Assembly (NCBI GenBank): GCA_964187785.1
Contig: OZ076412.1
Location: forward strand, 12,462,001-12,526,000
From: Amphiscolops sp. MND2022
Taxonomy: Eukaryota
Reading direction: 5' to 3'
DNA length: 64,000 bases
Translations under genes and position numbers: made by a program
The notes under the pieces: model-generated
What the model was told of the DNA's origin: nothing
Seen by the model: only the letters and a program-made list of their open reading frames with translations
Database searches by the model: none
In this document: positions 18,863 through 59,972 of the stretch, one piece after another
How positions within the stretch are numbered: the first letter of the stretch is position 1
Layout: each line of letters begins with the position of its first letter

Positions 18863-19013
18863 GACCCAACAAGTCCACCCTCCGTCAAAACACCCATTTT
18901 GGCCAAAAAATTACACTTCTGATAATTCCAACTAACCTATTCTCTTCACTTCTCATCACTCTGATGCTGTTGCTTTCTTCTTCCATGGCTTCATAGATGT
19001 CATCATTGTCAAC

Positions 19014-21361: not shown

Positions 21362-23969
21362 CTGTTTTACGTGAACAAAAAGCTCGTGAATATTAAAACA
21401 AAATAATTTTTGAAAAAAAAACAAGTTATTTCTGTACTAGTTTTCTGGCACATCATTACGTCAGAGGTTTACAGTTTTATGATGACGTGGCAAGAATTTC
21501 GGCTTCGGGCGAGCTTCACAGAGATGCCTTTAGTCCGTTAGACTTTTAATGCTCTTCCTATTCCCTTCGAAAATCGTGAGGCGAATTTTAGTGCCTGACG
21601 GCCAAAACTGATTGAGTACGAAACAAGACGCCCGCTAAGCACCGGGATATCATTCCCTGCTCAGTAGGGAGGCTGAGCAGGGAAGCTGAGTAAGTGGAAT
21701 TAGTATAAGATGAAGTTTTGGCAAAATTTGGAAGAAAAGAAACGCAGCACAGATCACTATTTATTACTCTTGCAAAAGTATACAAAACAAAAGTAATTGC
21801 ACATCCAAATACAAATAAGTACAGATATTAGAATAAACTTTATATTACATTATACATTGATTATATGCTGTAACCAAACCGGAAGTAACTTTAATTAGTG
21901 TAGATTTGATTCTTGAAGGCTTCTCTTATTATTGAATCGATGGAGCCATCGTCAGTTTCAAATTCTTTTTGACAAATTCCAGAAAAAAATTTTGAGAAAA
22001 TTGCAAAAAAATGAAACAGATAGAACTAAGAAAAACAACATGAAGAAAGTGAATTTTCTGGGTCTAATCCGATGACATAGATATCCGGTATACCTTTCAT
22101 TGCAAATATTTCAGTGAAGTATTTGAGATTTCATTAGTGGAAGCAAGCTTCCGTACATCGATCAATGTCTTTTGAGGGATATTTTGGATACAAATAATCT
22201 GTCACTCGAACGTTTGAAAGCCTATCTAATTCAACGTGATACAAAAACAAAACATAAGGTGATATCGGTTGTTTTGTTTTTAGAGATTTTCGAGGAAGCG
22301 TTTTGAAGGAGAAGCAATGAACTGGAGATATTAATGTATGAACTGCATATTTTTTAAGATGTAATATCGAACAGCATATTAAGAACAGCATATTACGATA
22401 TATAAATAAATTATAATTAATAGAGCTTTTGATATGATCATGATAAATTTTTTAACCACTAAATAACTGAACTATTCTTGGGCTGAAAAAAGGATATAGC
22501 CATTGATGGAACATGCAGGACCAATTTTGGAAGTATATGGGGTCATGAAGTAGTAAAAGGAGAAATTTACTACATTATAGTTTTTTGAGAAACTTTGAGA
22601 ATTGTGAACAGCAAAAGGGGGTGGTTAGTATTCAAATATGTGACATTAAACTTTGGACACAAGCTAATGGAGCGAAAACGGTGATGACCTGTTCCTACTA
22701 CAGTTGTAGGAAAAGTACATTGCCGGGTAGTACTCCTACGCAGTAAAGCTGAATCATCAATTAAATTTTACAAACGTCGACACACTTTTTTCTGAAACGG
22801 ATTTTTGTTTCAGGGCGTTCTTTCTATGCAATTGAGAACTGCCTCATGCAAGATCTGGTGGCTCAAGGAATTTACAAGCAGATTATCTACAAAAACAATC
22901 TGTGCACGTGTCCCAGTAGAATTTACCTGATGAAAGAATCCGCCGCCCTTACCATCTCAAGTCATTCCATTCTGCAGGTCGCGGGTTCGATCCCCAGTCG
23001 GCTCCTGAACTCCAATGTTTTGAATCACTTCATTTTATCTATCTTCAAATTCATTTCTTCTCTATCAATAAACCTTCTATGGTCAACTTTGTGGGCATTG
23101 TTAAACCCATCTATAGTTGACGCCCAGGATTTCGATCACCCTCACGGCTATTCTACTCCGTGCTCCATTGAGGAGAAGAAAGTTAGTACACTATGAAATA
23201 ATTTTTTTGTCGGCGTCTTTTGGAACAAAAAGTGACCCAACTCTTACAGTGCCAAGTTTTTTCTCTTTTGTCTGTGATCACACTGAATGATCGTCTTTTT
23301 TGTTCAATTTCTTCAACTTCATCGGTGATTTCATGTCATCAACTTTAAAATGTATTCTGGACCGTATTAGAAGGCTACAAAGTAGCAAAGAGCCCCTTTG
23401 AGGTTTTTCGGTTCTGTGCAACTTTTCATTTTAATTTCCTTAAAGGCATGACAAAAAGCCGTTTCAAGCCAGAAGGGTGTTTTTCGGTGCTGTATGGTTT
23501 TCCAGAATTTTTATAAAAACTTTCAGCATCTTCTAAAGACGTAGCACCCTTGGAACCTTAGGCTCGGCGCCGACTTGAGATGATATCGTCTTAATTACTT
23601 CATCAAAAAATTTCTTACAAGATAGAAAAATGCTCTTCAAGAATCCTTCAACTAGGGTACTATAGCTACTGTATCATAATAATATTTGAGTATGAATATT
23701 TGGGACTAAAATTTTCAAAATAGCAAAATTAACGTTTCAAAAATCAAATGCAAAGCAATGTTGAGAAAAACGATTAGCTTTTTATTCAATACAAAAAATG
23801 TATTGTTTATTGCTACATTTAAACAACTTTTTGTTTATGTTCTTACAACAGTATCCCTTACCGAAATAAACGGAGCAATTCCTTCGTAGCTTCCGTATCT
23901 GTAACATAAAAATCGGCAACAATTTAGCTTTTGAAGAACACGCGACGTCATAACGTTCGCCAAGACCTA

Positions 23970-38789: not shown

Positions 38790-38860
38790 AGCGCAAGTCA
38801 GCTTATAAAGCTTATAAAATCTGTCACTTCGTTGGTCCTTGAAAAAGAAAAGTCACTGCT

Positions 38861-40135
38861 TGTCATACCGGATGGTATGAAATACAACAACTGAAAGATG
38901 AAGTCATCACCAATTGCTCAAACATTTCAACTATAAACATTTTAAAATACATGTAAAATTCATATAACGGACGACTGTACCGTTCAGTCGTCACTCCAAT
39001 TTCACCTGTGCTACGAATTACAAAATTGTGCTAAGCAACGACCAATACTAATAGTCGTCCCAACCACAAACCAAAACAGTTAAAACAGAAATCTCCAGTG
39101 CATTTTGATCTCATCCTTTGTAAAATACAGAAATATGTTCCCCTCACCTGATTCACAGTAACGACTGAAACATGTAGTCGACTTTAGCAACCCTTTAGTG
39201 CAATACAATATTCATTCATGTAAACGACTGGCACATATAGTCGTATTTTAACCGATATGTACATGCAGTTCTTCATATCCAAATCATTGATAGTCCAGTT
39301 ACTAGAGCATCGTTTAGTTCATTTACCGTCATTTGAGTTAATCTTTAGTAACAATTACCTTCGAACACTAGTCGTCATTTGTGCTTAGTGCGTTAAAATT
39401 GCTAATTGGGAAAATACTACCAGTAATCAAGTGCAGTAATTATGCCCAACACTTCGATCACTAGTTGTAAATTAGTACGTGCTGTGATGTTGTGGGATCA
39501 ATGATACATGCTGGTGCGGCAACAGAAACTTAAACGCTACAATGGCATTTAGCGACGACCGAAGTGACCAGTCGTGTAATGTACCATGAGGTGATAATAG
39601 CAGGTTAACCAAAAAAGTTGAGTGAAAGAGACGCAAACAATCGAGTGCAATTAACAAGTAATTAAGAGTTTGAAGGTGCTATTGCATTATGGAAATTCAG
39701 ACAGAAGAAAATTGTTACCGTGAGATACAGACGTACTGTTAAAGCACTTTGCAAAGTTCACTACATTAAAATCACTTCTTTCATTTCAAACTACTTAAAC
39801 TTTACCCTTTTCAACAATGGTAAATACTCGATCGGGATACAATAGAGAGAACAGAATTGAGCAGTCTGGAAAAGATAGATATTTTGATGAGGACAACAAT
39901 ATGAGTGTCGCGGACCACTACACTGAAGACAATTTCAACAATGATATCGAAAGTGACGTGAGATCTATGGAAACGGATCATGAGAAACACAGGATTGAAC
40001 AACGTTTCCTAGAAATGAACCGTCAAATCGGAGAACTCACAAGTATAGTGAGAGCCCTTACTGATAAACTAGCTAACAGTAGGGAAGAGAACGGTAGAGA
40101 CGCACTAAATTCAGAGACGTCAACACATTCTGACA
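38861..40135 (+). repeat. 5' LTR of element C (1275 bp)
   Basis: Matches 52678-53959 with ~55-60 differences by eye (~95%). Confidence 0.97.
38971..39575. promoter_or_regulatory. Array of ACGACY-N9-AGTCGW palindromic sites in the LTR
   Basis: Sites at 38971, 39038, 39161, 39224, 39555 and a half-deleted one at 39355. All six are intact in the 3' LTR (52788, 52855, 52978, 53041, 53180, 53380). The spacer is always 9 nt. Function is inferred. Confidence 0.7.
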
Positions 40136-41362
40136 TGATGGTGACAGGAGTCTCGGCAAACCCACTGTCTACACCCAATGCTCAACCACCAAGAAGGACC
40201 CCCATTCACTACACGATGAACAAATGGGAGACGTCATGTCAGAAATACAGCACCTCAGAGCAACCATGACTGTTGGAGTGATCCAGCCAAAACTCCTCCA
40301 AACACAGGTCCCCCTCTTCCGTGGGAACCGAGAAAAGTATAATGAATTCGAACATCTACTCAAAAACAACCTCCGTCCCCACATGCATAAACTGACGGAA
40401 GACAAAAATTAAAATACTTCCAAAGCCCCCTCAGGGACGATGCCATCGACTTCTGGCAAACCCTGAAGAGTACGACCGAAACGACGCTTACCGAGATTCT
40501 CCAGGCATTTAACAAAGAGTATGCCAAAGGAGACCTCAAGGAAGTATCGAAGTACAAATTCGATCAAATGAGATACGACCCAACAACGGAGTCGTTTGCT
40601 GACTTCCTTACAAAATTCAAAAAATTAGCAAAAAAAGCGTACGAAGACAAAGCCAACGAAATAGCTGAAACATTCCTGTTCGCCAAACTACCCATCCAAA
40701 TACAAAATGAGTTGGCAATGGCAGGAAAACACGAAGCAACCAGTGAAGAGATCAAGACTCTTGTCCAAAGACGCTGCCAATACGCACAACTGCTACCTAG
40801 CACATCAGGGATGCAAATGTTGAACAATCTCCAGAATTACCCCGTAAAACAGCAAGCCAACCAACAAACAGCTACTACCAATAACCCGGGGAAATCAACT
40901 ACAAACAAAGAGGTCAAACGAAAATTTGAAATCAACTGTCGATATTGCAACATTGTCGGTCACAAATGGATTGACTGCCGAGAACGTCTCAGGGACGAAG
41001 CCAACGGAATTAACACCAAAACCTACCGACGCTCCAACCAGACAACAACAACCAACAGCCCCAGACCGACAAACCTAGATACAACTCAAAGCTCGTGTGC
41101 CAAATCTGTGGAAAAGTTGGGCACTCTGCACGAAACTGCAGAAATCGAGTCCCAGGCGCCTCAGCGTACCAGAATGTACCAGAAACAGTCTACGACGGAG
41201 AACCGAGAGTTCCACCGGGACTTCCGACAATCCCAAAATACCCGACAACCACCATACCAGGTATCACAAGTGACAAGTGAGCCCACCCAAACCGAAGGTC
41301 ACAACGACTGCTATGACGAGGAGTACAACGAGGAATTCAACCCGCATTCAAAAAACTTGTAA
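39817..41362 (+). pseudogene. gag: gag of element C, starting inside the 5' LTR
   Basis: ATG 39817 lies in the LTR and the frame reads through the LTR end and PBS. Capsid-like part (FRGNREKYNEFEHLL, ESFADFLTKFKKLA) and two CCHC knuckles (CRYCNIVGHKWIDC, CQICGKVGHSARNC). Frameshifts present. Confidence 0.9.
40139..40151 (+). promoter_or_regulatory. Primer-binding site of element C (tRNA-Leu-like)
   Basis: TGGTGACAGGAGT is one mismatch from TGGTGTCAGGAGT, the complement of the tRNA-Leu 3' end; it starts 4 nt after the LTR end. Confidence 0.75.
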
Positions 41363-41625
41363 AGCTACGTGATCCCCAATGCAACCAGACTACCAGTGCG
41401 CGCAAACAATCACAGACTAACTATTACTACGACTCAATGACTCAGACGTCAGAATGTCGGCAGCTTTCTGACAACCGGACTCAACTGTCTAAGAAATACT
41501 ACGTACACAAAGTTTCCACTAACAACTACCACATACTCCCACCAGTCGGTGATGACCCCACGTGTACATTTAAGGAGTGTACTGCAAGAGAGTCAACAAC
41601 CCACAAAACGCTCACCTAGACGAAA

Positions 41626-44600
41626 GTGAGAAACCAGAGACACCCACCCCAGCCGAAGTCGCCTAACCGCCCTAAACCAACAACTGTCAGGCCCCTCAGT
41701 GCGACATTACAACTAGATAAGCAAAATAAAATGCTCTATGTCCCCCTACAATTCAGAGCATATGAAAACCAAGGACTACTAGACACCGGAACAATCCAAA
41801 GTGCAATGTCAGAAAACGAACTACGCCGGATACTGCAAGCCCACCCGGCCGCCCAACTTGAAGAATACCCAGCCCCGGACCTCAAAGTCCAAATTGCCAA
41901 TGGAAGTATCGTCCCGGTACGGAAGCAAGTCCTCCTCCGATTTTTTATTGGTGGGAAAGTGTTCGAGGATGCATTCATGATATTACCGACAATGGGAAAT
42001 ATATTGATCAGAATGTCCTTCTTCAAAAAAGACTCTGTGACTCTGGACCTCGCAAACAACACTGTCAGATTCCCAGAGATCACCCTCCAACTGAAGCCAC
42101 AGAACGGGAACTTCAAATTACAAATGTTGGAACTCAGGGCATCACAGAAGACGACCATCTCACCCTGACAGCAAGTCTTTGCCGAAAAAGACATTGGTAA
42201 TGTAACAGGCACAGTGGAAGCGTTCCCGGCATTCGGACGTAAGACGGAAATACTGGTGTCTCCATCGATGTCCGAAATAAACAAGCAGCAGAGCCATGTC
42301 CAAATCACCAACTATTTGGACCACGCAATAACGATTCCCCAACACACAACAGTCGCAGTCTTCCGCATCTTGACCCCAAACCAAGCGAAGAACGTCCAAC
42401 CAATGACAAATGAACAACTGACCCTTTTTCCAAATTTCCAGATGAAGCAAACAATGTGATCAATCAGTTGTTCCAGGAGCCCGGTGCAACCAAAGACAAG
42501 CGATGGTACCCAACCCCCGAAACATGCGACGACCCCAATAAACTGAATAAAGTCGAGCGCCGAATATATGATGAAATCATTGAACTCCGGGAAGCCGAAA
42601 AGCTCGATCCCACCTTGTGACGATGACCAACGACAGACGTTCCTGAAGAATTTCAGCTGGGATGACTCAATCCTCACTGAGCAAGAGCAACAGAAGATCG
42701 AAGCACTGTTGGTCAATTACCACATGATTTTTGAACGCCACCGCCTCGACATAGGCATTAACATTGATATCAAGATCAAGCTTACGCCCAAACACGACGA
42801 CCCAGTGTACGCGCAGAGCCTACCGACTCCGACCAACATGAGAGATGATCTCCTTGTCGAATTGGCCCTGATGCAAGAATACGGAATCATCACTACACTC
42901 CCGTACAGCAAATATTCTTCCCCGATATTTGCACAACGGAAGCCCAATGGAAAACTTCGAATACTAGTCGACTTGAGACGCATCAATCACTTTCTCAAGA
43001 ACGACTACAACCAACACAATCACCCGGTCAGAACAATACACATGGCTGGCAAGAAGTACTTCTGCAAGCTTGATTGTTCACAAGCTTACCACTGCCTTCA
43101 GATGGCCGATGAACAATCAATCCAACTTCTTGCATTTAACTTTGGCAGCAGAACCTTTGCATACCTTCGTCTTGCTCAAGGGTTGATCTTTGCCTGCATT
43201 CAACAGCACAATCCGAGAGTACCTTGATGTTCTAGTAAAATCAGACAAATGTGCACAATACGTTGACGACATTGGGGTCGCTGCAAACAACGTGGACGAA
43301 CTGGTTGCCATTATCAAAGCAGTTTTCCAGCAGATACAGAAAGCAGGCTTGAAACTTTCGATGTCAAAGTGCGCCTTCGGACAACCGAAGATCGAATTCC
43401 TGGGTCGAAGTATAACCACCAAAGGCATCGCACCCCTTGAAGACCGCATTGACGACTTCCTCAAAAAGATGAAACTGCCAACATCAGTCAAATCGTTCCA
43501 ACGGTAAATCGGATTTGTCCAGTTCTACAGACAATATATTCCGAAATTGGCAGAGAAGCTTGTCCCACTGTACAAACTACTGCAAAAAGATGTCAAGTTC
43601 GCACTGACGCAGGTACACAAGGAGGCGACTTTTGACATCAATGAAAATCTAGCACGAGCTGCGAAACTGTCACTCAGATTGCCATTGCCTGACAAACAAC
43701 TTGTCATCATGTGTGATGCCAGCGAACACGCAGCAGGGTATGTGCTGCTTATTGAAGACTTCACTGGAAGTAACGACGACAAGAAGAAGACGTATGCACC
43801 CGTTGCTTTTGGTTCCCAACGGTTCACTGAAGGCCACATGTCACTGACTATGTATGCTAAAGCAATTTTAGCCATGCATTTCGCCTTCGACGAGTTCGAT
43901 CACATACTATGGGGAGTCAAGAAACCCACCATCGTGATGACAGACAACAAAGCGCTAACCCGCTTTTTTTCCAATCAAAGCGGATGCCACCAAAACTGTG
44001 GAATCCATTGCGATCAAGCCCTGCAGTTCGACTTAAACCCACGTACCAGGAGTTGAAAACCCAGCCGCTGACTACCTGTCCAGGCTCGACATTACCCCGG
44101 AGACAGGATCCATCTGAAACTTAACGACCAGATCCGTGTCCACTACATCGAGATTGACCTAGTAGCAAAAACTCCGAAACAAGACGACGATGAAGAGGAC
44201 TACGATCCCGATCAACCGCAACACCCTACAACAGCTGACCCCCTGGAACAGAACCAACTTAACGCACCCAACACCCACGATGCCTTCAATCAAATGCAAT
44301 GCTTACTGCATTCCCTCGCGAACTCCCAACACCAGCATGACGACGACCGTGCCAAGGTGATCCAGATCATCAGTCGTCACCTCGAGCCAGTCCTAGCAGG
44401 CGCAGCTGCCTCCATCATGCTGACGAAGTTTACCAGAAGACCGCACCCCAACACGGTAAACCAGGTATGCCCGCAAGGGGATTCACAAATAGTCCAGGAA
44501 CAACTAAGTAACCAAGACGTCCGAAAAAAGGTTCGAGTCTTAGTTAACAACGAACCTCTTCCTAACCACGTAATTTTTGCTAGTTCTTCTTTCCAAAAAC

Positions 44601-46065
44601 TCGTAAAAAACAGAAAACGCATTGAAGTAGTCAACAAGGTTTGGACAGGAATTTTTTTGATAACACTGGTAGAGTTCTATTTAAACAAAATGTAGTACCT
44701 CCAGAAACTACGATGCCCATAATCAGGACGATGCATGGCGACCCCATGCAGGGTCACCCTGGGGCATCTAAAATGCTGGTAGAACTCCGCAAGCGTTATT
44801 ACATACCTAATTTTAGTGAACACGTTTCAAAATTCGTTAGTAATTGTACGGACTGTCTAAAAGCTAAACCCGTTAACCCAAAACGCCTAACTCCACCTCT
44901 AGAGAAGATCTATGACCACTGCAATGGTCCTGAAGACATACTCGAGGTTGATCTGGTACTAATGAGAACTGCCGGGATTCAAATCGAACAAGCAACGGTA
45001 AAGCATGCACAGACCATAGGGATGGTTGAGTGTTCCCATCAGAGGCTAAAGCAGATACTGAAAATCAACGTCGCAACTGACTCTCCCCAATGGGACAAGT
45101 ACAAGTACATTAACCTCGCAGTAATGGCCCATAACACAACCTACCACCAAGCACTTAGATGTACCCCGAGCGAAGTGTTTTATGGTAGAGTCCCGTTTAA
45201 CGCACTGGAACTTAAGTTCAGCAACCCCCTGCAATGTCGAACACAAGAAACCGACTTAACAAAATTGATCGACCAAGTGATCGAGAAATATGAACAAGTC
45301 AACAACAACATACTTCAAGCCGACCACAAGTACAAAAGGTACTACGACCGTAAACCTCAGGCATCAACTCTGAAAGTTAATGACATTGTGTTCCTTCTCA
45401 ACCCGAAAACCACTGACCAGTCAGACAAAATGGCCATCAATAACTTCAAATGGGAAGGCCCTTTCAAAGTAGTCAAAGTGTTAACTAATTTCAACTACAT
45501 AATCAGGAAAGTCGGTACTTTTCGCACACAATGCGTCCACAGGATGCGACTACGTCCTTTCATCCCGAACGCACCTATACAAGACATTGACGAAGATCCA
45601 ATTCTCTTCTTTGCTGACCCTGAAGCGTCTGACGATCAAGAGCTCGTCAACGACCACTTACCTCGGACAATCCACTTTGAACGAAAGCCCGCACTAGCAG
45701 CTCCTGAAGAGCTCGATACCGAACATGGTATCATATACTACGAACGTGTCCAAAGGTAAACGGACCGACAACTGGCACAGCCTATCCCTGAAAACTCTCC
45801 TCAAAACTTAATGCCACCAACTGACGACTCCAACGTCAGTGATGACTTCAAAGACGAATATAGTGCCGAACCCGACGAAACTGCAACTAACTATAATGAA
45901 CTGCCAAACACCAACGACGAAGCACAGGTAACGTCCCGCAATAGCAGTACCCGTTACAATCTACCGGCTCAACCTGCACCGAGGACTTACCGAGACTTCC
46001 TTGTTCATGAACTTCAAGTAAAACCCGTCTTACAAAATTTTCTGCAAAACAACAAAACCAACTAA
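41626..46065 (+). pseudogene. pol: pol of element C: protease, RT, RNase H, integrase (frameshifted; integrase core partly deleted)
   Basis: GLLDTGT; SSPIFAQRKPNGKLRILVDLRRIN; YVDD (43259); CDASEHAAGY; HGDPMQGH..CTDC; KWEGPFKV; C-terminal RYNL motif. Confidence 0.95.
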
Positions 46066-47446
46066 AAGTAAATGAAACACTCCAAGTAAATGTCTGACAT
46101 TTACAGTTAAAAAAAAACGTGTACCAAACATACTTCACACAACAAAAAATAGTTTTCCCCTTTAGTTTATTCAAAACTGTACCCCTCAATAACGACTGCC
46201 AACAGCAGTCATGAACAATATCTATCTAGACAACGAAGGTAATTGTTCTGCATTTACACCACACCATAACAGTTCTCATCCAGTAATACCAACACTTCCA
46301 AAATGAAATAACAAACAAATCAATTGAAGCGACTAAACGACCATTGCCTACCGTCGACGCTATTTCAGCCGACGCTAATCATCCCAACAAACACGGTACG
46401 GAAATACATGTAACGCGTAAATTAACGAGAGATAATTTATTCAATTCACACCAAAATTGCCACAGCCACTATAGAAGCGAATTGCTTCGAATGAAAAACC
46501 ATCACAACAAATCTAGCAAAACGTGAACGCAAATACCGTTCCCAAATAGAGAAAGGAACTAACAGTGACGTGGCGATCTGCTGCCTGACAAACGTTATAG
46601 CAACACAATCAAGCCCTCACCAATTTCACTCTACACTAATAGCGCTGGCTTTGTGGGTGCGTCGTTAAAAAGCGTGCTTGTGTGGTTGGTCGTCACAATA
46701 CAGATGAAAGTTGCTCTATAGCAACTGGATTCAGTGTTAGTTTTGTATGGGTGGTTGCGTCGGCAATTCACCTTCCCAATGAACCGAACCTCAAAAATAG
46801 AAACCAAGCAATAAACCATGCCAACGGTCGTCACTTCACTCCCGAAAATTAAGATACATGTGAACAAAAGTTAATTCGCTGCTACTTTATGCATTTCACG
46901 TAAAACTCTCAGCAAACTGCAATTTGAAGAAATTGTCCTACAATTTCACTACCTAGCAAAATTAACAACACACACACCGATACTAAATGCAATCTACTAC
47001 CATCTTTGTCCTACCTCACAAAGGAAATCCAAAACAAAGAACAGAGTAAAAACTTCAATTTCAAACGCCTTATAGCGTCATCAAAATAAACAATAGCAGC
47101 ACATACAAGTTGTATCAAATTCATGTAACAAAAACTCATGTAACAATTCGCTCAAACTCCAGATGCATAATACAATGAACGCATGTAAGTAAAAGACCAA
47201 AGAACGCAACAAGCGAAATCAAACGTTCCTTACTGGGACTAACAACGAGTTTCAGCCAGAAACAAATATGAAAAAAAATGAAAGGATGACGTCAACGCCA
47301 AGAGCAATACGGCACCAATCAGTATCACAACGAATACAAACGGTTGATTCACAAAATTGTAAACAATTCAGTTTCAACTAGTTTTGTCTAAGTGTAAGTT
47401 TCACGAACTAGCTAATACCCCTCCGATGATTCATCCATCAGAACGT

Positions 47447-50400
47447 TCACCAACTTTCGTTTCGCGGCCTTCTTGGTGTTTCTCTTCGAGAGGGCTCTGC
47501 ATTAGCCGTCCTTTTTCCATTCCCACCACGTGAACTGGAAGGTAAACTATCATCCTTCTGTGACCGAGGCTGTTTTCCACGCGCAACATGACGAATTAGA
47601 GGCTCATCATCAGCAACAGAGAAAGTAACGGGAGACCCACGCGACGCAGCATTACGGGATCGGCTCTTCAGCTGTGCTTGTGCGTCGTCAACACTCTTCC
47701 TCAATTGCGCGCACACCGCTGACCTATAGTCGTCGACTGAAATGCCCGCCGATTCCACAGTCCCTTCGTGAAACACACGATAACATCGCGACAACACCTC
47801 CTCACCTCTCTCAGGATCCATCAGCCGGGACACCTGTATATCAGTAGTCCCGCAGTAACGGAGAAATCCAGTCGTCAGTTTCCTTGCACCGCCGACTACG
47901 CCCGCACTTGTCCAACTGCGCACTAAGTTCATGCTCTATAGCAATTGCCCTTGACATAGAGCAGTCACTTCGACATCCAGAAAATCAGTTACCTACTGAC
48001 TTCGAGCAGAACAACAAATGACAATTTTGAAAACATCCAGTGAATCCGCACAACGCGACCAAAAGGGGTAAGACCGCCACAAGCTAATGACATCATCAAC
48101 CATAGGACCAGTAGATGACTGACTACGCCAACGGTGCAAAAAGTACTTGTAGACTTAATCATACTGTTGGACAACATTAGCACCCTGAACGTCACTGAGG
48201 AAACCTAGACGAGTTAGTAACAAACAACAGTCCATTAGGGAATCCACAACTCGATCTTTTGAACGTCTGTAAATAGCCTCGGGAGCAAATGCAGAGAGGC
48301 TAAGTCTTCCTTCAAAATCCGAATGATAATCAGCTACGAGATTTTCGCATATCTTGGCCATGAACAATTGGATCTCTCGATAGAACACGCGCCGCTGGTC
48401 GAGGACGTTGAAGCGAAAGTACTGAACAAACAAAGCCTTGTATCGCTCCTGTGGAACAACACTGAGCTCGATCAGCTTGGTACTGAAAAGACGATCGTGA
48501 TCAAACGCTGCAGGGACCTTGTCTGCATCTTGGACCATACATTTCAGCCGTCGAAGGAATGTCACAAACTCAACTTCAAAACATAAGTCGCGGTCACGAC
48601 TGTTCGTACACCCTCGAGGAAAAGACGTCACACTAGTACAAGCAATAAAACCATCATAATGATGGCCTAATTCAAATTAGTTCCCCACCCTTAACCAAAT
48701 GATAAAAAGAGAGGTCAAAACCAACATTCTCGGCCAATGAACTTTTTCCTTTGAACAAACAACCACTACACAAAAAAAAGAGAAATACATCACAACCAAA
48801 CGTTCATACTTGCCTTCATCCAATAACCATCTTAGCATAGCCATCTGTGGTCGAGCCAACCGGTCATTAAAAATGACAACATTCAGACTGGGGATTGATC
48901 ACAGCTCCATCATAGCCCCACCGCCCTCATTGCCAAAGTAGACAGCCAGATCGTTCCAACGTTCAACGAGCTCTCCACACACAGCAGCCAACTGCGGTAA
49001 CGTCAACTCTTCGCTTCGCACGTACTGTAAAAAGAATATGATTATCCACATTTAACCTGCGGGGTGTAACATTGGGACGCCCTAACATTTTAGTCCTACT
49101 CCTATCATCACTGTTTTTGTTTCGAAACAAACTAGACAAAACTCATACAAGTTGCACACCGCGTACCCAAAACCTTATGTCATAATGAAGTACCTGTCGC
49201 AACAAGGGCATTCTGTCGAAAACTGAACCATACTCTACACTCGACAGTCGGTACTTGAGGAATTCAAGCACGTTGTAAGGGTCCAGACCACCAATACGTT
49301 GACAAAACTGCTGCCGGATGCTCCGCTGTAGCAACTGTACGTCATTAAAACGCATCACAACTGACTTGCCAGCAGGTATAAAATGGGCCAACGACCGTCC
49401 GACAGCGACAAGGGTGTCCACCACAACACTACAAAAGTTCGGCAACGGATCCAAACACAACAGCACTGTGACAGTTAACCCAATCACCTCCTCCTTCCAA
49501 CGGTCACACACAGGCCAGGTAACCAGAGTAACGATTTTCAATTCGGCTTCGTCTACGAAATGACAGTCGACCCGCCAGAAATTGCCATCGAAGTACACTC
49601 AGAGACCCACTCGACTCCCAGAATGTACGAGTCCACATATCTTTTCCATGACGTACGGGTACACCCCATACAATAACAAACTCTAAACAAACAAAACAAT
49701 ACAAATCTCCCAAAAATTAACATACCCAAAACCGCGTAAAATAAGTCTAGTACATGTAACATGCAAACTAAATAACATAACGATCCCCCCCCCGGTAAAA
49801 ACAACCAAAATGAAAAACTTACATGGAATACAACGGTACCTGACATTTCGCAACAGTAAGGCTCCGGGCCACAAAGTTCAGTTCCCCTCTCAAGCTGCTA
49901 GCCTACCCATCCATTAAACGCATCAGTGACTCGAAACCAGCAACCGATCCAAAGCAGTTCAGGAAGAAACACAAACACAAGTACGAGGCACCGTCCTCTG
50001 ACAGAACTGGCCGAGAGTTTTCTTCTTCAGCTTCACGCTCCAATGCAACACGTTCCTCTAAGGACAAACTGATAGGGGACTCCAAATACACTGGAGGTTC
50101 AACCATGTGTTCCAGTCGTATCCTCCTATCTTCTTCAACAGAAACGGGCCGACACGATTTATCCAGTAACGGACGTTGGGTCATTATACGGAACTTTTGC
50201 TCTAATCGTGTATGCTCCGACCCTTCCAATGACCCCATAAGTTCCGCAAGCCACGACCCGCAATTCTGAGGTCCACCCGACACATTAAACAGCGCGCGAA
50301 ACCATCGAGCACACGCTTATGCCGTGGGAACCCGACAAATAGGCCCACAACATTTGAAACGAAATAAGACGGTTTCCAAGTATTGAGCCTCCTCTTCCTC

Positions 50401-51703
50401 ACTAAAACAACATCCTAAATCTTTTAAAAAATCTGTAAACTCTAACACCATGAAAATTCAAGCTAGTGCCTATGTTCCCCCTCCAAAACTATACACGCCT
50501 AGAAACAGCCTTGATGCTTAATTCGGTCCCAAAAGTTAGTATAATATTAAATGTGATCTTGAAAGTCTTTACCAGGTTTCGTAATTGCGGATGTCCCGAC
50601 AGCAGGCTCGTCAACCGCTGTCACAGATGCAGGCCCTCCAAACACAGTTGGCACATAGGATCCAGTTCCAGAACCCCCGCACCCCGGAGTCGTACCTTGA
50701 CTATCCACCTCCACGGACGGCAGATCAATCGAAGGCATTGCCCCACGAGTCGTCATATCAGCACGTTGCTTCACAAAGATTTCTTGAGAAGCGGCTTTGA
50801 AAGTGTGCCAGAACTCATCGACACGGAGTGCCCCGAAATTTCCAAGTTCTCCCAAAGCGGACTCCAGAATTGCTTTCGTTAACTGGTTCACGCAGTTTTC
50901 CAGTCGGGTCTCCACTCGTTCCAACTGATCCTCCAACGACAGAACAGCACAGTCATCTGCCCCTAGCAAAATCAAACAATACTGATTCTGGCAAATTGAT
51001 TAGTTCCCTCCCCAACTGATCCTACCCATTCCCAACGACGAACGGAGCCACACCAGGACAGTTCCATGATACTATAAGACTACAGATGCGATAAACCCGA
51101 AGTTCCGATGCAACACTAACCCAATTGCGCGTCCATCAGCTGGTGCACTCGCTCACCCACACCTTCTGGAGGCGCCACGACCGCTTGACGATCTCTCCGC
51201 GGGAAAGCCCGTATGTGGTCGAGTCACGCCGGAACATGTACGTCACCTACGAATGAGGCAAAAGATGGAATCACTATCTCATCATGAGGCACTCCTGTAT
51301 AGCCTAACGCTAAAGTGAGCTAACATTGTCAAATTAATGCACAACAGAACGGACTTTTGCACAGCACTGCTAAAATACACCTCCGAAGAATACAAAAAAG
51401 GTAGAAAAAGACTCGAGCAAAACAAAGATGGCGAGACAAGACATAGTGCTCGCAACGAGAATATGCTGACACGTGACGACCAAACAATAATGAAGAGTAC
51501 TCACGGAATTCATCTGATAGAGCAAGTTCTAATAACTCGTTCATGCTCCCGAGTGACGACGACGTAACTCGCCCAGCGAATTGACAACACGGCAAGTCCA
51601 AATGTTCAGCCTCAGCGGCCAACGCTCCTTCTGAAAGTGCTTCAATGCATGAAGCCATCTCCTCTAATTCCTGATAACTCTGCTCAGCAACTGACACTAA
51701 CGA
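47447..51703 (-). pseudogene. Spliced antisense accessory gene of element C; BED-type zinc finger plus hAT-transposase-like body (~1146 codons, 6 exons; 5' end unresolved)
   Basis: Exons 51703-51505, 51294-51121, 50962-50573, 50401-49840, 49682-49149 and 49024-47447. Five GT-AG introns each keep the frame. This copy has 8 internal stops and 1 frameshift. Motif C-x2-C..H-x4-H at 50291-50212. The spliced gene is well supported; the hAT assignment is by-eye (~0.6). Confidence 0.8.
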
Positions 51704-52666
51704 CTATAAATCAAGATCGAAGGATGAACCGCCCAGATCGGACATACGATTGTACAAAAGGACGATTTCCAAACAAGAAGAATAACGACTCAATAATTCA
51801 ACGCTGGTGAAACCGAACATGTGGCCTGATCAACTACATTTTCCTTAAATTGCCAACACTATTTATTACTCAAAAGTTACTGTCATGTGTGATATGTGTG
51901 GTACTGAAAGAAAAAATCACCCCAATGAGAAATTTCAACAGAGTATAATAACCTCCGATCACTGCAGTCGTTTTTTCTACTTATGTTCTTTACTATCTCC
52001 CAAAGCCCTTCGGACCGGAATATATTCGACCTCAGCCTCAAAGAGACAAAAGTGATGAGCGGGAACAATCAATAGCCAATAATCACGAGAGTAATAAAAC
52101 AGCAATATGAAACGCGAGAATAATGACTTGTGAATAACACCGCTGATACTAAATATTATGCAATGCACTACCAACTGCAGCAGTTATGAATAGTTTACAC
52201 AAGCACGAGTAGCGGAAATGGAAAACAGAATAAACGACTCACTGCATCAAACGTGTAACACTCCCGAGCACACGCAGACTGCCGCAGTCGTTGTTCTCTG
52301 ACTATTTACCTAACACGACAGATCCCTCTTACCAGCGCACGACCGGATGACGTGGCATACTGATTTCCACTCCGAAATTATTACTTCCACTCCACGACAC
52401 TATGATGCAAGTGACGTCATAGCTCAACTTTGCTTACGCCTATCCGACAGTAAACCAATAACTGTTTCCAACTCACGATGACTATTATTACCAGTCGTCA
52501 TATGATTTAAGACTTCCACCACACGCGTGACAGCTGCCTATACTCGTGAGCCGTAAACCACCCACTGAAAAAGGCGACCAACCCCTTTAGTCGCCCCTTA
52601 CAATAACCACAAATACTTGCCACACCCGCATTCACTCCGACTTCCTGCCCACTTTCTTCTTTTTCT

Positions 52667-52677
52667 AAGAGGCGGAG
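52667..52677 (+). promoter_or_regulatory. Polypurine tract of element C
   Basis: AAGAGGCGGAG lies immediately before the 3' LTR. Confidence 0.75.
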
Positions 52678-53959
52678 TGTCATACCGGATGGTATGAAAT
52701 ACAACAACTGAAAGATGAAGTCATCAACAATTGCCCAAACATTTCAACTATAAACATTTTAAAATACATGTAAAATTCATATAACGGACGACTGTACCGT
52801 TCAGTCGTCACCCCAATTTCACCTGTGCTACGAATTACAAAACTGTGCTAAGCAACGACCAATACTATAAGTCGTCCCAACCACAAACCAAAACAGTTTA
52901 AAAAGAAATATCCTGTGCATTTTGATCTCATCCTTTGTAAAATACAGAAATATGTTCCCCTCACCTGATTCACAGTAACGACTAAAACATGTAGTCGACT
53001 TTAGCAACCCTTTAGTGCAATATAATATTCATTCATGTAAACGACTGGCATATCTAGTCGTATTTTAACCGATATGTACATGCAGTCCTTCATATCCAAA
53101 TCATTGCTGGTCCGGTTACTACAGCATCGTTTAGTTCATATAGTCATTTGAGTTACTCTTTAGTAGAAAATTACCAACAACGACTTCGAACACTAGTCGT
53201 CATTTGTGCTTAGTGAATAAAAATTGCTAATTGGGAAAATACTACGAGTAATCAGTTGCAGTAATTATGCCCAACATTTCGATCACTAGTTGTAAATTAG
53301 TACGTGCTGTGATGTTGTGAGATCAATGATACATGCTGGTGCGGCAACAGAAACTTAAAAGCTACAATGGCAATTAGCGACGACCGAAGTGACCAGTCGT
53401 GTAATGTACCATCAGGTGATCATAGCAGGTTAACCAAAAAAGTTGAGTGAAAGAGACGCAAATAATAAAGTGCAATTAACCAGTAATTAAGAGTTTGAAG
53501 GTGCTATTGCAATATAGAAATTCAGACAGAAGAAAATTGTTACCGTGAGATACAGACGTACTGTTAAAGCACTTTGCAAAGTTCACTACATTAAAATCAC
53601 TTCTTTCAATTAAAACTACCTAAACTTTACCCCTTTCAACAATGGTAAATACTCGATCGGGCCACAATAGAGAGAACAGAATTGAGCAGTCTGGAAAAGA
53701 TAGATACTTTGATGAGGACGACAAAATGAGTGTGGCGGACCACTACACTGAAGACAATTTCAACAATGATATCGAAAGTGGCGTGAGATCTATGGAACCG
53801 GATCATGAGAAACACAGATTGAGCAACGTTTCCTAGAAATGAACCGTCAAATCGGAGAACTCACAAGTATAGTGAGAGCCCTTACTGATAAACTAGCTAA
53901 CAGTAGGGAAGAGAACGGTAGAGACGCACTAAATTCAGAGACGTCAACACGTTCTGACA
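52678..53959 (+). repeat. 3' LTR of element C (1282 bp), including a frameshifted copy of the gag N-terminus (53642-53959)
   Basis: Copy of 38861-40135, followed by TSD CTGCT. Confidence 0.97.
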
Positions 53960-56040
53960 CTGCTATAGTCTGCGTTTTCTACGAAGAGCACCGACTAAAA
54001 ACCAGTTTGATATTCTCTGGAAAGCCCCGAGAGAACTGAAAAAAAAATGCAAACAAACTTTTTAATTACGACAGTTTTTTGAAGCTTGTGTACATTTTTC
54101 GGATGTTTCCGTGGGTAAGATGTTCCACAAAGCTCATCAACGAAACAATTGGCGACTCCACAATTTTTTTAAAGTGAAACAAATAATGACTCAAATAAGT
54201 CAAAAGTACCAATTTTTGTTTTTTTTCGAACGTTTTATGCCCTCTCTGAATTTTATTTAAAATTTCGTGAGTATGGAGATTTACACAGACAAAGCAAACA
54301 AGAGTAGTTAGCTATTTTTCATACTTTTTTGGAGAAATTTTGAGTTTTTACAAGAACTGTACATAAAATTTACTCCTTTGGAATGTGATGGTGTAGTGAT
54401 TAGAGCACAAAGCATGTTTTGTTGTATCATGTGCGACATTCCCAATACTAATTATTGCTGAGCCTTAGTTGACAAACTTTCAACTCTGGCTTGATGACAC
54501 CGGCATGACAAAAAAGCGCTTTCAGAGAGAACGAATCTGAAAAGTGAAAGGAGCAGCAGGCGTTTGTGACCTTGAACAAGTCATTCAAAAAAGTTTTCCC
54601 TCTAAACGTTTGATTGCTTCATGTATTTGGTCTACACTTTTTGGATACTTGGATAATTTTGTGGGCAAAGGTACCCACGGAGTTAAACAACAAAACAGAT
54701 AGATACTCAGGATCCTTGTGTATGGAAATTAATCTTCTGGCTTCCAAAAATGGAAAAAAATGAACGACGAAAAGTATATTTTTCTGAAATTTTTTGAACT
54801 TCTCTGCATATTCGTAGTTTGAAATAGCCCTAAGGAAAATGTAGTCACTAAGCAGATTCGGGTTTCAAAATATTCTTCTGCTCAGTGAGCGTATCGGTTT
54901 TGGTCGGCGCGTTTTGTAAGAAATGAATTGAAGCACTGTAGCAATGGCTTTTCAAGAACAGCGAACTGACAGATTTCTATGAGAATTTATTTAAATGGTA
55001 ACTTCTAACTGCCACTTGGCCTAAAGGTTAAACCGGATTTTCTGAGGTCTGTAAACAGGAGCACGTGTGTTCAAGTCCTGCACTAAACCATACTCCTTTA
55101 TGCTTGCGAAAGTAGAGAGGAAACCAAAGGATCTACTTAAGGGATGTTTCGGCACTATACGACATTTCTTCTGACGTTTTTCCAACGGAAGTGCCTCCCT
55201 TGATTTGTAGCGGTGACAGAGCGTTTTGCGAGCATAGAAAACCACCTTAGGATTTTGAAGCAACAAACGGAAAAAATTCAAAATTTCAAAAAAAAATATT
55301 GCAATATTTTTCATAATCTTTTCAGGCAAGTTTTTTAGAGACCCAAGGGTGGCCTTTTTGATTATCTTTTGGTCCTGTAGAACTGATGAGAGTTTTCTCA
55401 ATAATTATGAAAATACTTCAGTTTTTTCGTCACTGAGCGACTTTTATTTGGAATTTTTTTATTCTGTCAAAGGGTATCCCACTTCACTTTCATAAGTGTT
55501 CTCGGCATAGAAAACCGTTTTGCGAGTTTAAAGCTCCTTTTTCGGCACTATGAAACTTTTTCTGGGTAAAAAAGATTTCGGTAAAAATTGTTTCGAAACA
55601 TTGTTTTTTTATGTTTTCAGAAGGAAGGTTTTCCATCGGGAATTTCCTGGCACTATAAATTTGATGACATTTTCGCAACAGTTCCCTTTGCTTCGAAAAA
55701 TCGTTTTTTAACCTTATAATAATAATAATAATTGAATTTATCCTGGCATATTTAAACAACAAAATACTTTTTTTTCTACTCACATGTAGAAAATGACAAA
55801 TATTTGTACAAAATTGCCAAGGAAGGGGCATCAAGTAAGCTATTAGAAAGCTTTTTGTAAAGATGCCCGAAAGAAAAAAAGTAGTGAAAAGTTAGAGGCA
55901 TTTCCAAGAGACTGGATAAGACTGTTTATTTTTTTTACATATAATTTTTCCTTTTAATTTTATTTCTCATCAGATATCGTATCAGCACAAATCATCCTCG
56001 CAAGTCCTTATGTGGAGGACCATGCAGTGTGAGAGACTCT

Positions 56041-58880
56041 TCAATATTTATTATAGAAAATACTTATCAGTTCATCATTTCCAAAAATGTAAAGATCTGC
56101 AATTTGGTGGTAGAACTTTTTATATTGCTTTTCATCCATTTCGCATATGTTTTTATCAGGAGGCAATACTCCCCATTTGCGTAATGCATTCGTTAATATT
56201 ATTGCACGATAATCAAGAAGATCATTTTTTTCAGCAAAATTCCATATATTGAGATTTTGGTTCCTCGTTTGTCTATTCTGTATCCCAATATTGAGAATTT
56301 TGAATCCATTTCTGATCTGATCAAGTGAAAATTTGAATAATTCATAGAGGTGATGTTCGAATACTGTTCCAATCCTGAATTCCTTGAATTTTTCTATGAC
56401 ACTGGCCCATGGAGGAAGCCGTAGAACTATCCGGATTAATTTTTTCTGAAGCAATAGAATTTTTTGTAGCTTAGATTTAGGTCCTAACCCATAGAGAAGT
56501 GCACCATATTGAACAACTGGTGATACATATGATCTAATATACTGTATTAGTTGTCTTTTATTCAAAGTTTCCCTTAATTTATAAAGTATGCCACTATGTC
56601 GCGCAAGTTTTTGGATGACCTTGGTAATGTGTACTTCAAAATTGTTTTTTTCAAAAAAGATTCCTAAATATTTATAACTCTCAATAGAGGATATTTCATT
56701 GTCCCCAATTTTTATGTTCGAGTACTTCACAGATCTTTTCTCAAAAACGACAAATTTTGTTTTTTTTTCAGAATTACAGGCAACTCTGTTTTCCGACATC
56801 CAATTTTGCAAAAGATTTTTATCATCAGAGTTAGAGTTTAATTCCTCTATCATAGCTGTATCATCAGCGTAAAGTATGAGGTCGCCCTGCCAATTTGGGT
56901 CGGTACCAAGATCATTTATATAAACAAGAAACAACAGAGGTCCCAATATTGATCCCTGTGGTACTCCACGTATTATAGGTTTAATCGTAGAGCATTTATC
57001 CTCAATTTTCACAAACTGATACCTATCTGTCAAATAATGTTCTAAGAGTTTATGGGATATGCCCCTGATACCGATATGGTATAACTTTTGTAATAAAATT
57101 TTGTGGTCAACTGAGTCAAACGCTTTTTTGAAATCAACAAAAATACAGTTTGTTTTCACTTTGGATTTCCAATTACTTTGAATTTTTTTCCATAACATCG
57201 TTGCTGCTTGTAAGCAATCTTTCTTTTTTCTAAAACCGTATTGATTTTCTGATAGTATTGAAAATTTTTCTAGATAATTCATGAGTCTTTTATGAATTAC
57301 TTTCTCAAATATCTTTGATAGATTTCCCAAGATCGAAATCGGTCTATAGTTGGATGTTATATTTTTTCTCCATCTTTAAAAATTGGAACAACTTTAGCAA
57401 TTTTCATACTTTTAGGAAAAACGCCTTCGGATATACATTTATTAAAAGCTGTTTTTAAATAGGGAGTGATAATTTGAGCCGCTGCTTTCAATATTCTCAC
57501 GTTCACGCCATCTAATCCAACCGATTTTTTGTTTTTTAATTTGGCAATAAAATTATAAACTTCTTCATTAGTAACTGGAAAGAAGTACATAGATTGCGAC
57601 TGATATCCTTGTTGACTTGTCCATTTACTGGACATCGGTGCATTAATTTCTGGATCACAAGCAGTTATGAAATAATCATTGAATTGATCAACAGTCAATT
57701 CACTGGATTTTTTCACCTGAGTTTCTACTCCTCTCGATCTTTTTATATACTTGAAGAGTTCTTTTGGATTATTCCGATCAACTTTGCTTTGAACGTCATT
57801 CCGTTTAGCAGCTCTTATTTCCTTGTTAACTTCATTCCGCTTCACTTTGTATCTATGGAAGACCTCCGGTGATTTTGTTCTGATCCATAAGTGGTAGATT
57901 TTATCTCTGATAACTATATGCCTTTTGATACGGTTTGTTATCCAAGATTTATTGGGATCACGTCGTTTTATTCGTTTAAGTGGGAAGTATTTCTCTGTTG
58001 CCTCTTTCAGGGTTTTTGTAATATTATCGAGATATGTTTCTGCTTTTGCATCTGATTCGGGAATTTTACCCAGAGAATCACTGAGAAAAAATAGAAACTT
58101 TTCACAATAAAGTGGATCGTCTAGCTTTTTTAAAGATCTAAATTCAAAAATCTCTTCTACTACTTCATAGTAAATATCTAAATCTAATTTAAGACTATAG
58201 TGATCAGAGAACGTGGTTTTTTCTATCTGGGATCTTTGAACAGTGATGTTACTGTATATAGAGTCAATACATGTACCAGATGTAGCTGTTTCTCGTGTAG
58301 GTTCTCTCAAACTCACCAAGTCAAGACCTTGTGAATACATTAAATACTCTAATGATACTCGTGTAGCTAGATTTTCGTTTAACATATCAATATTGAAATC
58401 TCCACAGGCTATCTGTAACCCGCCACTGTTGATTTCAAGAACTTCTTCGACGTGATCTAAATACTTACTTTTGTTTCTGGAAGGTTCGCAATAAAAACAA
58501 GAAACTATGACTTTCTTTGTCTTTTTGAAGTCACTAACTTTCACTGAAATTGACTCATTGTATTCATCAGTGTGCAGGAGTTCTGCTTCCAAATCTAGCG
58601 TTACATAAATTGCTACACCGCCACCTCGTTTTTTAGTTCTAGTGCTGGCAAAAGGTCTGTGGTATCCTTCAAGACAATATAATTCTGCGTCACTTTCGCT
58701 CTTGAACCATGTTTCAGTGAGTGCAATGATTGAAGGCTTTCTTTCTGCTATCAAAATTTCTAAATTACCTAAGTTGGTTGATACCGATCTTATATTATTG
58801 TAGAAAAACGTAAATCCCTGCAACGTTCTATTTTTTGAGTTAGTGTTTAGTGATCTTATATATTTACAGTCTGTCTCCAA
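56041..58880 (-). pseudogene. LINE ORF2 (AP endonuclease + reverse transcriptase) with a single frameshift near 57355
   Basis: APE motifs YNNIRS, ALTETW, GDFNID, CIDSIY, SDHY. RT motifs FVDFKKAFDSVDH, GVPQGSILGPLLF, YADD. Adding one A in the run at ~57362 restores KDGEKNITSNYRPIS. Confidence 0.95.
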
Positions 58881-58961
58881 TGCCTCTTCGGAGTTGCTTG
58901 GGTTGCTAGTTTTTATAGTTTGAAATAAGCAACTCCGTCGCTGTTAATGCTTTCTAACATT

Positions 58962-59972
58962 TCACTTCTTTTGGCCATTTTCACTTTCGTTTAATCCAGT
59001 TACTTTCAGTGGGGGCGAACAACCGATTAAATTTTGAATAAAGTTTTCTAAGCCATCTGCATCAGAAGCCTGCTTGTACTCTTTCAGTTTATTTGTAATA
59101 TCCACGTTTGAGAGCATATTGGGTGAATCCATAGGAAGCGGTCTTTTAGCTCTTGGTTCGCGTGGAGTTTCAGTAGCGGCACTTTTTCTCACTATAGCCT
59201 TGCCACTTGCAAGAATTTCGTCTGCATCTGTTTCATCAACAATGAAATGAGACCTTGTATGCTGTCCGTCCTTCAGAAGCACCACTGGAGCACTGTTTTT
59301 CGAAGACACTTTGAGGCCCAATCCGGCTGCATAATCCGATAAGTCCCTGTCCCTCTTTGTCAGCCTCTCATGCATGAAAACAGGTTTATTGTTAACTGGG
59401 TTTCCGAAATTTCTGAGCCAATATTTCCTTGCCCATATCCTATCTTTTTTCCAAAAATGGACAAACTTGACTATTACAGGGGGTGGGAATTTGATATCCT
59501 TGACTTGTCCCAGAAAATGACATGCTACAAGGTCTTGTTCATTTACCTGAGTTTGGAAGACTCGTGAGAAAAAGTTGATAACATCAGCTACTAAGTTGTT
59601 TCCGGAGATAAGAGGTAAGTTTTGAATAATAATTGAGTCCTTGGATGTATAACGCTCAATTCGATTAACAGATGTCTCAAGATACGCAACTTTTTGTTCC
59701 AGGGTTTCAATAGTTTTGTCTTTTTCCTGTAGATTTTGAATCAATTTCGAAAGAAATTCTTGTAATTCAGGCTGTATTTTATTGCCAAGTTTATTCAGCT
59801 CTTGCACTAAGTCCGCCATGTTTATTTTCAGCTTTGAAATTTGGCCTTGAATGTGTTTCAACTGCAGCGACGAAAAGCACAACCGTTCAGCTTGACATCT
59901 GTCTCGAATAAATGCCCTATTCAAACTATTGAAAACTACGGTGGAATGAGGTAATCTACAAAGTTCGTTCAC
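58962..59972 (-). CDS. LINE ORF1 (coiled coil + RRM-like); probable start ATG 59819
   Basis: Coiled coil (IETLEQKVAYLE) followed by SIIIQNLP..VACHFL..PVIVKF, typical of L1/CR1-type ORF1. Confidence 0.85.
   Translation of the reverse strand: MNELCRLPHSTVVFNSLNRAFIRDRCQAERLCFSSLQLKHIQGQISKLKINMADLVQELNKLGNKIQPELQEFLSKLIQNLQEKDKTIETLEQKVAYLETSVNRIERYTSKDSIIIQNLPLISGNNLVADVINFFSRVFQTQVNEQDLVACHFLGQVKDIKFPPPVIVKFVHFWKKDRIWARKYWLRNFGNPVNNKPVFMHERLTKRDRDLSDYAAGLGLKVSSKNSAPVVLLKDGQHTRSHFIVDETDADEILASGKAIVRKSAATETPREPRAKRPLPMDSPNMLSNVDITNKLKEYKQASDADGLENFIQNLIGCSPPLKVTGLNESENGQKK

Follow-up and report, generated by a model that had tools for sequence, protein, structure and literature searches.

A seven-exon antisense gene with a predicted transposase-like fold in a Ty3/Gypsy retrotransposon of Amphiscolops sp. 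MND2022

The window analysed here is a 64,000-nucleotide stretch of Amphiscolops sp. MND2022 DNA (assembly GCA_964187785.1, contig OZ076412.1, positions 12,462,001 to 12,526,000, forward strand). Positions 38861-53959 hold one complete long terminal repeat (LTR) retrotransposon of 15,099 bp, which carries a minus-strand gene between pol and the 3' LTR. Self-comparison returned one long direct repeat, 38861-40135 against 52678-53959, with 94.8% identity over 1285 aligned positions. The element shows the hallmarks of Ty3/Gypsy elements, namely LTRs with TG...CA ends and a target-site duplication (TSD) of 4-6 bp, a primer-binding site (PBS), a polypurine tract, and the order reverse transcriptase (RT), RNase H and integrase. 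Pfam detected RVT_1, RT_RNaseH, Integrase_H2C2 and Integrase_p58_C in the Gypsy order, spread over several frames, and returned no match to the rve integrase core in the pol of the window copy. The same RT-RNase H-integrase order recurs in the intact 1380-aa pol of L008, one of several related copies (numbered L001 to L011) used for comparison. Five-bp TSDs also flank relatives (CTAAT in L008, ATATG in L009). The parts of the element, including gag and its open reading frames (ORFs), are as follows.

38856..38860, no strand: TSD CTGCT, 5' copy, repeated directly after the 3' LTR at 53960-53964
38861..40135, plus strand: 5' LTR of 1275 bp, TGTCA...TGACA, 94.8% identical to the 3' LTR
40139..40150, plus strand: PBS TGGTGACAGGAG, 3 nt beyond the 5' LTR; the same 12-mer also abuts the 5' LTR in L008 and L009
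39817..41362, plus strand: gag, two ORFs in the window copy, with its ATG within the 5' LTR (ORF list; the L008 counterpart is a single 511-aa ORF)
41626..46065, plus strand: pol (protease, RT, RNase H, integrase; Pfam), fragmented into several ORFs
46066..47446, no strand: spacer from the end of pol to the end of the antisense gene, free of long ORFs on both strands
52667..52677, plus strand: polypurine tract AAGAGGCGGAG, directly before the 3' LTR
52678..53959, plus strand: 3' LTR of 1282 bp with TGTCA...TGACA ends, direct repeat of the 5' LTR
53960..53964, no strand: TSD CTGCT, 3' copy, matching 38856..38860

Between the end of pol (46065) and the 3' LTR, the plus strand holds short ORFs alone, and the minus strand is a chain of stop-poor segments. 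A first-pass annotation made from the sequence alone had reported these minus-strand ORFs at 47447-51703 and joined them into one gene. The ORFs are present, and every motif quoted for them was found. Splice junctions were read from the DNA at each homology boundary in the window, L002 and L004-L007, and intron phases were checked arithmetically and by reading the exons singly. The corrected window model comprises seven exons and six introns, with about 1055 codons in 3166 nt. Its features are listed below in the direction of the gene, with a slash at each exon-intron boundary.

51659..52666, minus strand: upstream region of about 1 kb, presumed promoter and 5' untranslated region; a spacing of about 1 kb also occurs in L008
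51505..51658, minus strand: coding part of exon 1 from the likely ATG (51658-51656), the Met of the EEM(A/S)S motif common to the window and L002
51295..51504, minus strand: intron 1, phase 1, donor TTC C/GTRAGT (conserved junctions)
51121..51294, minus strand: exon 2, with a premature stop at 51226 (exon reading)
50963..51120, minus strand: intron 2, phase 1, donor G/GTAAGT, GTTAGT in the window (conserved junctions)
50573..50962, minus strand: exon 3, open (exon reading)
50402..50572, minus strand: intron 3, phase 1, donor CCT G/GTAAR (conserved junctions)
49840..50401, minus strand: exon 4, in which a CX2CX16HX5H zinc finger lies between a basic patch and an acidic linker; one base deleted near 50221, stop at 49905 (alignment)
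49683..49839, minus strand: intron 4, phase 0, donor CAG/GTA and a pyrimidine-rich acceptor ending in AG (all lineages)
49194..49682, minus strand: exon 5, 489 nt, RNase H-like core (AlphaFold and Foldseek), premature stop at 49601
49025..49193, minus strand: intron 5, phase 0, donor /GTRAGT, CAG/GTACTT in the window (conserved junctions)
48814..49024, minus strand: exon 6, 211 nt, premature stop at 48901 (conserved junctions)
about 48633..48813, minus strand: intron 6, phase 1, donor of the G/GTNAGT type in L002 and L004-L007; the window has GC at the donor and an alternative GT at 48809
47447..48632, minus strand: exon 7, all-alpha region and basic C-terminal tail (homologous open ORFs); stops at 48157, 47995 and 47938, terminal stop at 47449-47447

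All six introns retain their position, phase (1, 1, 1, 0, 0 and 1 for introns 1 to 6) and GT-AG ends in five relatives (L002 and L004-L007) that share 30-55% protein identity. Every intron ends in a pyrimidine-rich tract followed by AG, and the bases left over match the phase. Exon lengths agree as well: exon 5 measures 489 nt in L004-L007 and, with the corrected donor, in the window as well, and exon 6 was counted at 211 nt in L002 and L004-L007. The five introns first proposed were largely correct. Introns 1 to 4 and the acceptor of intron 5 (49025) were placed exactly, but the donor of intron 5 had been set at 49148, 45 nt too far downstream of the conserved site between 49194 and 49193, and the sixth intron had been missed. 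That intron (about 48813-48633) lies inside the 526-codon frame originally taken for the last exon, whose low stop count does hold; it has 5 internal stops, far below chance, where the other two frames have 27 and 36. The earlier exon sum of 3437 nt was arithmetically right, but its 1146 codons give way to the smaller corrected model. In the region upstream of the window gene, neither TATAAA nor TATATA was found. No polyadenylation signal occurs within 1 kb of the stop of the antisense gene, the only minus-strand AATAAA hexamers of the spacer being at 46441 and 46171.

The copy of the antisense gene in the window is a pseudogene. The first-pass annotation had restored one base, but the damage is heavier than this suggests, with seven premature stops (51226, 49905, 49601, 48901, 48157, 47995 and 47938), a 1-nt deletion in the codon after the HWKG motif of exon 4 (about 50221), and GC at donor 6 where GT is conserved. 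These defects, together with the broken pol and an LTR divergence of about 5%, mark an old, dead insertion. The window element is likely a single complete but dead Ty3/Gypsy copy, from a clade of 15-16-kb elements that bear the seven-exon antisense gene. Its allele L001 additionally lacks 49 bp (50262-50310) of the finger exon. The window and L004, with only about 38% identity between their lineages, lose the frame in the same codon after HWKG, at an AAGGG run (about 50221 and about 8530, respectively). This common break could be a mutational hot spot or a coincidence. Programmed frameshifting at the site was set aside, as a slippery heptamer is absent and L005-L008 and L002 read straight through.

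Relatives support the gene as an integral part of the element. A search with an exon-5 piece (151 aa) returned 19 proteins and its profile 24, and a last-exon piece (173 aa) returned 44 cluster representatives among 1.84 billion proteins. In both searches that report source and annotation, ENA metagenome assemblies account for all exon-5 matches, which are without exception unnamed and free of Pfam domains. The pol search likewise returned unnamed ENA metagenome proteins and nothing else. L001 (sample ERZ25074608) is an allelic copy of the window locus, with 99.3-99.4% identity in the element and near flank and about 95% in the far flank, which assigns the window to the predominant eukaryote of that sample. 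The gene lies tail-to-tail with the Gypsy pol in L001, L004, L005, L007 and L008, as in the window, and the last four represent distinct lineages with 33-70% identity over the antisense cassette. L008 is young and intact, with LTRs 99.8% identical, gag of 511 aa, pol of 1380 aa, and all seven cassette exons open. L006 and L010 come from a second sample. L009 belongs to a sister family, with a pol about 50% identical and LTRs 99.87% identical. Both L009 and L011, the latter from a third sample, hold an antisense ORF with identical finger spacing and a recognisable exon-5-like segment. L002/L003 represent a decayed cassette copy with no Gypsy pol within 10 kb.

Coding capacity has been maintained across this divergence under purifying selection. 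Exon-7 homologues form single ORFs of 360-439 aa that are open in L004-L008, and last exons of 360-440 codons stay open despite identities of 33-56%. Where it was computable, between L008 and L007, the ratio of nonsynonymous to synonymous substitution (dN/dS) is 0.05-0.23, with saturated synonymous differences (pS 0.53-0.78) and pN of 0.07-0.19. No terminal inverted repeats (TIRs) bracket the cassette, where inverted repeats stay at chance level (25 nt or less), and an 8-bp TSD around it is absent. The cassette is hence not a nested insertion. The plus strand of the element is A-rich with C in excess of G, and the same bias runs unbroken across the cassette, as expected if it has long been copied as part of the element RNA. 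The first-pass annotation had described an LTR retrotransposon with an integral antisense, intron-containing gene. It had further proposed checking whether aligned copies show the cassette at one position with conserved GT-AG sites and dN/dS below 1, and had named TIRs with an 8-bp TSD as the signature of a nested hAT transposon. The comparison bears out the reading as an integral gene. The antisense gene is vertically inherited with the element, of which it is very probably an integral, selected and spliced part.

The encoded protein has an N-terminal region (exons 1-3), a basic patch, zinc finger and acidic linker (exon 4), a domain modelled with RNase H topology (exon 5), and a predicted all-helical part with a basic tail (exons 6-7). 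Exon 4 is the most conserved exon, with 48-76% identity across alignment rows. Every lineage keeps its CX2CX16HX5H motif, as do the sister families L009 and L011, and this spacing would fit the pattern of a BED-type finger. The AlphaFold (AF2) model of exon 5, built from 21 sequences (pLDDT confidence score 77), predicts the order b-b-b-a-b-a-b-a of strands (b) and helices (a), which is the RNase H topology. Foldseek against the PDB returned 12 matches at E<=1e-3, comprising HIV-1 integrase cores and the hAT transposase Hermes. Hermes has the best TM-score and root-mean-square deviation (rmsd), and its best-fitting chains reach a TM-score (TMq) of 0.44-0.48 and an rmsd of 4.3-4.6 A over about 133 columns at probability 1.00. 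In a second library, BFVD, the top match is a Pandoravirus protein annotated with a hAT dimerisation domain (E 2.7e-5, TMq 0.45, rmsd 4.5 A, 21% identity). The C-terminal 80-120 residues of exon 7 are basic, rich in Ser, Arg and Lys, and disordered, a composition compatible with nuclear import.

Catalytic residues present a mixed picture. The Asp at the end of beta1 (FDG) occurs in the window subclade, L002 and L004 and is absent from L005 and L006, while L007 and L008 have only a neighbouring Asp. An Asp or Glu after beta4 is nearly universal in the family. No third catalytic acidic residue was located, and the family does not conserve the acidic (DDE) triad typical of hAT transposases. The proposal that the protein is non-catalytic consequently stands for the first acidic position, which is not conserved family-wide, but not for the second. 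The protein is called hAT-like by fold rather than a hAT member, because the DDE triad is not conserved and neither hATC nor zf-BED is recognised from sequence. The locus is likewise not a hAT transposon, given the lack of TIRs and of an 8-bp TSD.

Several observations weigh against reading the locus as a spliced gene for a hAT-derived, non-catalytic protein. Support for splicing is comparative, consisting of GT-AG sites, phases and exon lengths conserved across lineages. A spliced full-length protein is absent from the databases searched, where the longest match measures 439 aa, roughly a single exon. The first-pass call of a BED-finger, hAT-like protein is backed by the RNase H topology of exon 5 and by hAT proteins as its best neighbours in two libraries, but no sequence method detects hAT or zf-BED. 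Pfam searches of window pieces and intact relatives (E<=10 or E<=1) recognised no family, hAT, zf-BED (PF02892) and hATC (PF05699) included, and on ten window pieces (E<=10) returned nothing beyond a chance-level bDLD3 match (E 0.039, below its cut-off). PDB profile searches with the exon-7 and exon-5 alignments also found no match. The Foldseek E-values are modest (1e-3 to 3e-5) and come from the model of a single exon. The exon-7 model is all-helical and poor (pLDDT 59) with no Foldseek match, which leaves any hAT insertion and dimerisation domains hypothetical. With the post-beta4 acid near-universal and the beta1 Asp retained in the window subclade, loss of catalysis is at best probable, and the function of the protein is inferred throughout.

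Two alternative explanations concern how the cassette came to lie in the element. An unrelated DNA transposon, hAT or other, could have inserted into one element; the RNase H fold is transposase-like, and nested events are known in this genome, as with the BEL/Pao element inside the L002 copy. This explanation is effectively refuted, since TIRs and a flanking duplication are missing, the strand composition of the cassette is that of its host element, and position and orientation are the same in six elements whose lineages share 30-55% protein identity, including the one with 99.8% identical LTRs. Alternatively, a host gene may have been captured once and carried along without use to the element. 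LTR elements are known to transduce host sequence (PMC11963269), and the L002/L003 copy without a nearby Gypsy pol would suit such a passenger. That copy is itself decayed, however, and the exons elsewhere stay open under the low dN/dS noted above while synonymous sites are saturated. The gene is also present in several families and three samples, and no free host homologue was found among the 5.8 billion proteins searched, which makes the passenger account very unlikely.

The origin and activity of the RNase H-like domain leave more room for doubt. It may derive from a different DDE source, for example a retroelement integrase that was duplicated and inverted, or a transposase of some other superfamily, in which case the resemblance to hAT would be generic. 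The HIV-1 integrase cores do have the lowest E-values in the PDB, a library with few eukaryotic DDE transposases, and a hAT sequence signal is lacking. Those cores nonetheless align far worse than Hermes (TMq 0.24-0.33, rmsd above 11 A), and BFVD independently ranks a hAT-domain protein first. The finger is CCHH and N-terminal as opposed to the HHCC order of integrases, and the region after the core is predicted to be all-helical where an integrase would have an SH3-like barrel. We consider this derivation unlikely, and hAT ancestry, as suggested by the structural model, the moderately favoured one. That the protein still works as a nuclease or transposase, endowing the element with another activity at the DNA level, is less probable still. 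The near-universal acid after beta4 and the FDG Asp of the window subclade would fit an enzyme, but the beta1 acid is missing from L005 and L006, and L007 and L008, the latter a young intact element, have just a neighbouring Asp. A third acidic residue is not identifiable, and TIR-like ends are absent.

An intron that lies antisense is not spliced out of the sense genomic RNA, and reverse transcription therefore copies it. The introns of the present gene would survive retrotransposition because the sense genomic RNA reads them as CT...AC, so that they are never removed before reverse transcription. As read from the sequences of its copies, the element has been shown to carry the gene through transposition with the introns retained. 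A dedicated promoter in the roughly 1 kb adjoining the 3' LTR would drive antisense transcription, and host splicing of this transcript would yield an mRNA of about 3.2 kb. The predicted product is a nuclear, nucleic-acid-binding zinc-finger protein on a transposase-like scaffold, which would serve the element in regulation, targeting or protection. It may descend from a hAT-type transposase, with transposase chemistry probably lost. A non-catalytic regulatory role is only a tentative proposal. Less probable is the wider scenario in which a metazoan Ty3/Gypsy clade anciently gained the gene of a hAT-type transposase and has retained it ever since in antisense orientation, spliced separately and essential to the element. 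Such a hybrid of retrotransposon and DNA transposon would use the protein to guide the element, through integration-site choice or tethering, transcription switching, or shielding from silencing.

Plant Gypsy elements and a few retroviruses are known to carry antisense accessory genes, mostly as single ORFs. In plant Retand elements, the region from pol to the 3' LTR spans 2.9-6.6 kb and includes a conserved antisense gene whose product is predicted to bind DNA and is suspected of acting in regulation (PMC11963269). The antisense ORFs of the plant Tat/Retand group (TRP28/Transposase_28 in Grande, RIRE2 and Retand) and the gene described here are alike in the long pol-to-3' LTR region, which measures 6.6 kb in the window. 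They differ in host, which is a metazoan instead of a flowering plant, and in protein, since Pfam found no match to Transposase_28 (PF04195) in window pieces or intact relatives. The present gene instead has seven exons, six conserved introns, and a CCHH finger with a hAT-like RNase H fold.

Minus-strand genes near the 3' LTR also occur in retroviruses, as HBZ of HTLV-1, APH-2 of HTLV-2 and ASP of HIV-1, and HBZ is spliced. The retroviral antisense product is nuclear and regulates its element (PMC11963269). HBZ is nevertheless a small basic leucine zipper (bZIP) protein with one intron, whereas the gene described here has about 1050 codons, six introns and no bZIP, and resides in an LTR retrotransposon without its own env. 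The order of parts resembles that of hAT transposases (Hermes, BED-finger hAT proteins and domesticated ZBED proteins), with an N-terminal CCHH finger, an RNase H-like core and a helical region. Unlike these, it lacks Pfam zf-BED and hATC matches, a conserved DDE triad, TIRs and an 8-bp TSD, and it lies antisense inside a retrotransposon instead of forming its own mobile unit. In the literature, of which coverage was partial, no description of an animal LTR retrotransposon with an antisense transposase-like gene was found. The gene is a variant of the antisense accessory genes, sharing their position, orientation and presumed regulatory role, but its host kingdom, its size, the number of its introns and its protein family are different. 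An animal host, as the first-pass annotation supposed, receives indirect support from a BEL/Pao element in the same genome, which the allelic contig ties to the window. To our knowledge, BEL/Pao elements are confined to metazoans.

The locus offers a clean natural demonstration of six antisense introns riding through retrotransposition, copied in each round of reverse transcription. With its recognisable, transposase-like domain ancestry, it would also exemplify how a transposon of one class can take over an enzyme scaffold from a different class. Elsewhere in the same genome there are young intact copies, their LTRs 99.8% identical, from elements that look currently active, and these provide a tractable system in which to study the role of an antisense gene. 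For annotation, the example warns that scattered ORFs downstream of pol may be a real gene missed by gene callers and repeat maskers.

Further observations concern the layout of the element and its relatives. The gag ATG at 39817 lies about 320 nt upstream of the end of the 5' LTR, which places the PBS within gag; the ATG is likewise inside the LTR in L004 and L008. The start of gag is thus repeated, in truncated form, in the 3' LTR, a layout to which that of Ty1 is comparable. A tandem arrangement, in which the repeat at 52678-53959 would be an LTR followed by another, truncated internal region (PBS near 39510), was excluded by the TGTCA...TGACA ends, the CTGCT TSD and the common PBS, which define an LTR of 1.28 kb that includes the gag ATG. 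In L002, a BEL/Pao element at 11409-19162, with a 1276-aa pol and 964-bp LTRs of 98.65% identity, interrupts the last exon of the cassette. A link between this cassette and BEL/Pao was rejected, as the latter is a nested insertion with its own LTRs that splits exon 7. In L009, an additional sense ORF of 360 aa (21007-22089, plus strand), with no Pfam match, separates the antisense gene from the 3' LTR. In L011, from a related Gypsy family, four sense ORFs (14021-17402, plus strand) lie between pol and the antisense finger ORF, and the pol-to-3' LTR region is hence variable among these elements. In L005, the integrase ORFs (Integrase_H2C2, rve, p58_C) occur twice in succession downstream of a single RT (region 13411-17595, minus strand), perhaps through duplication within the element or as a fragment nested in it.

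Elsewhere in the window, ARAGORN calls a tRNA-Ser(tga) at 43413-43497 (minus strand) within the RT coding region; the call is probably spurious, because Rfam sees nothing at the site. A non-LTR retrotransposon with endonuclease and RT occupies 55716-59899 on the minus strand (ORFs 56041-59972). It is absent from the allelic contig L001 and therefore represents an insertion polymorphism or a haplotype difference. GC skew is extreme between 4 and 20 kb (-0.29 to -0.57). A second, different Gypsy-like element lies at about 6900-19000 on the plus strand, and its ORF at 13691-15877 (plus strand) encodes a 728-aa env-like protein that matches the Monjiviricetes fusion glycoprotein family of Pfam (PF24664, E 2e-22).

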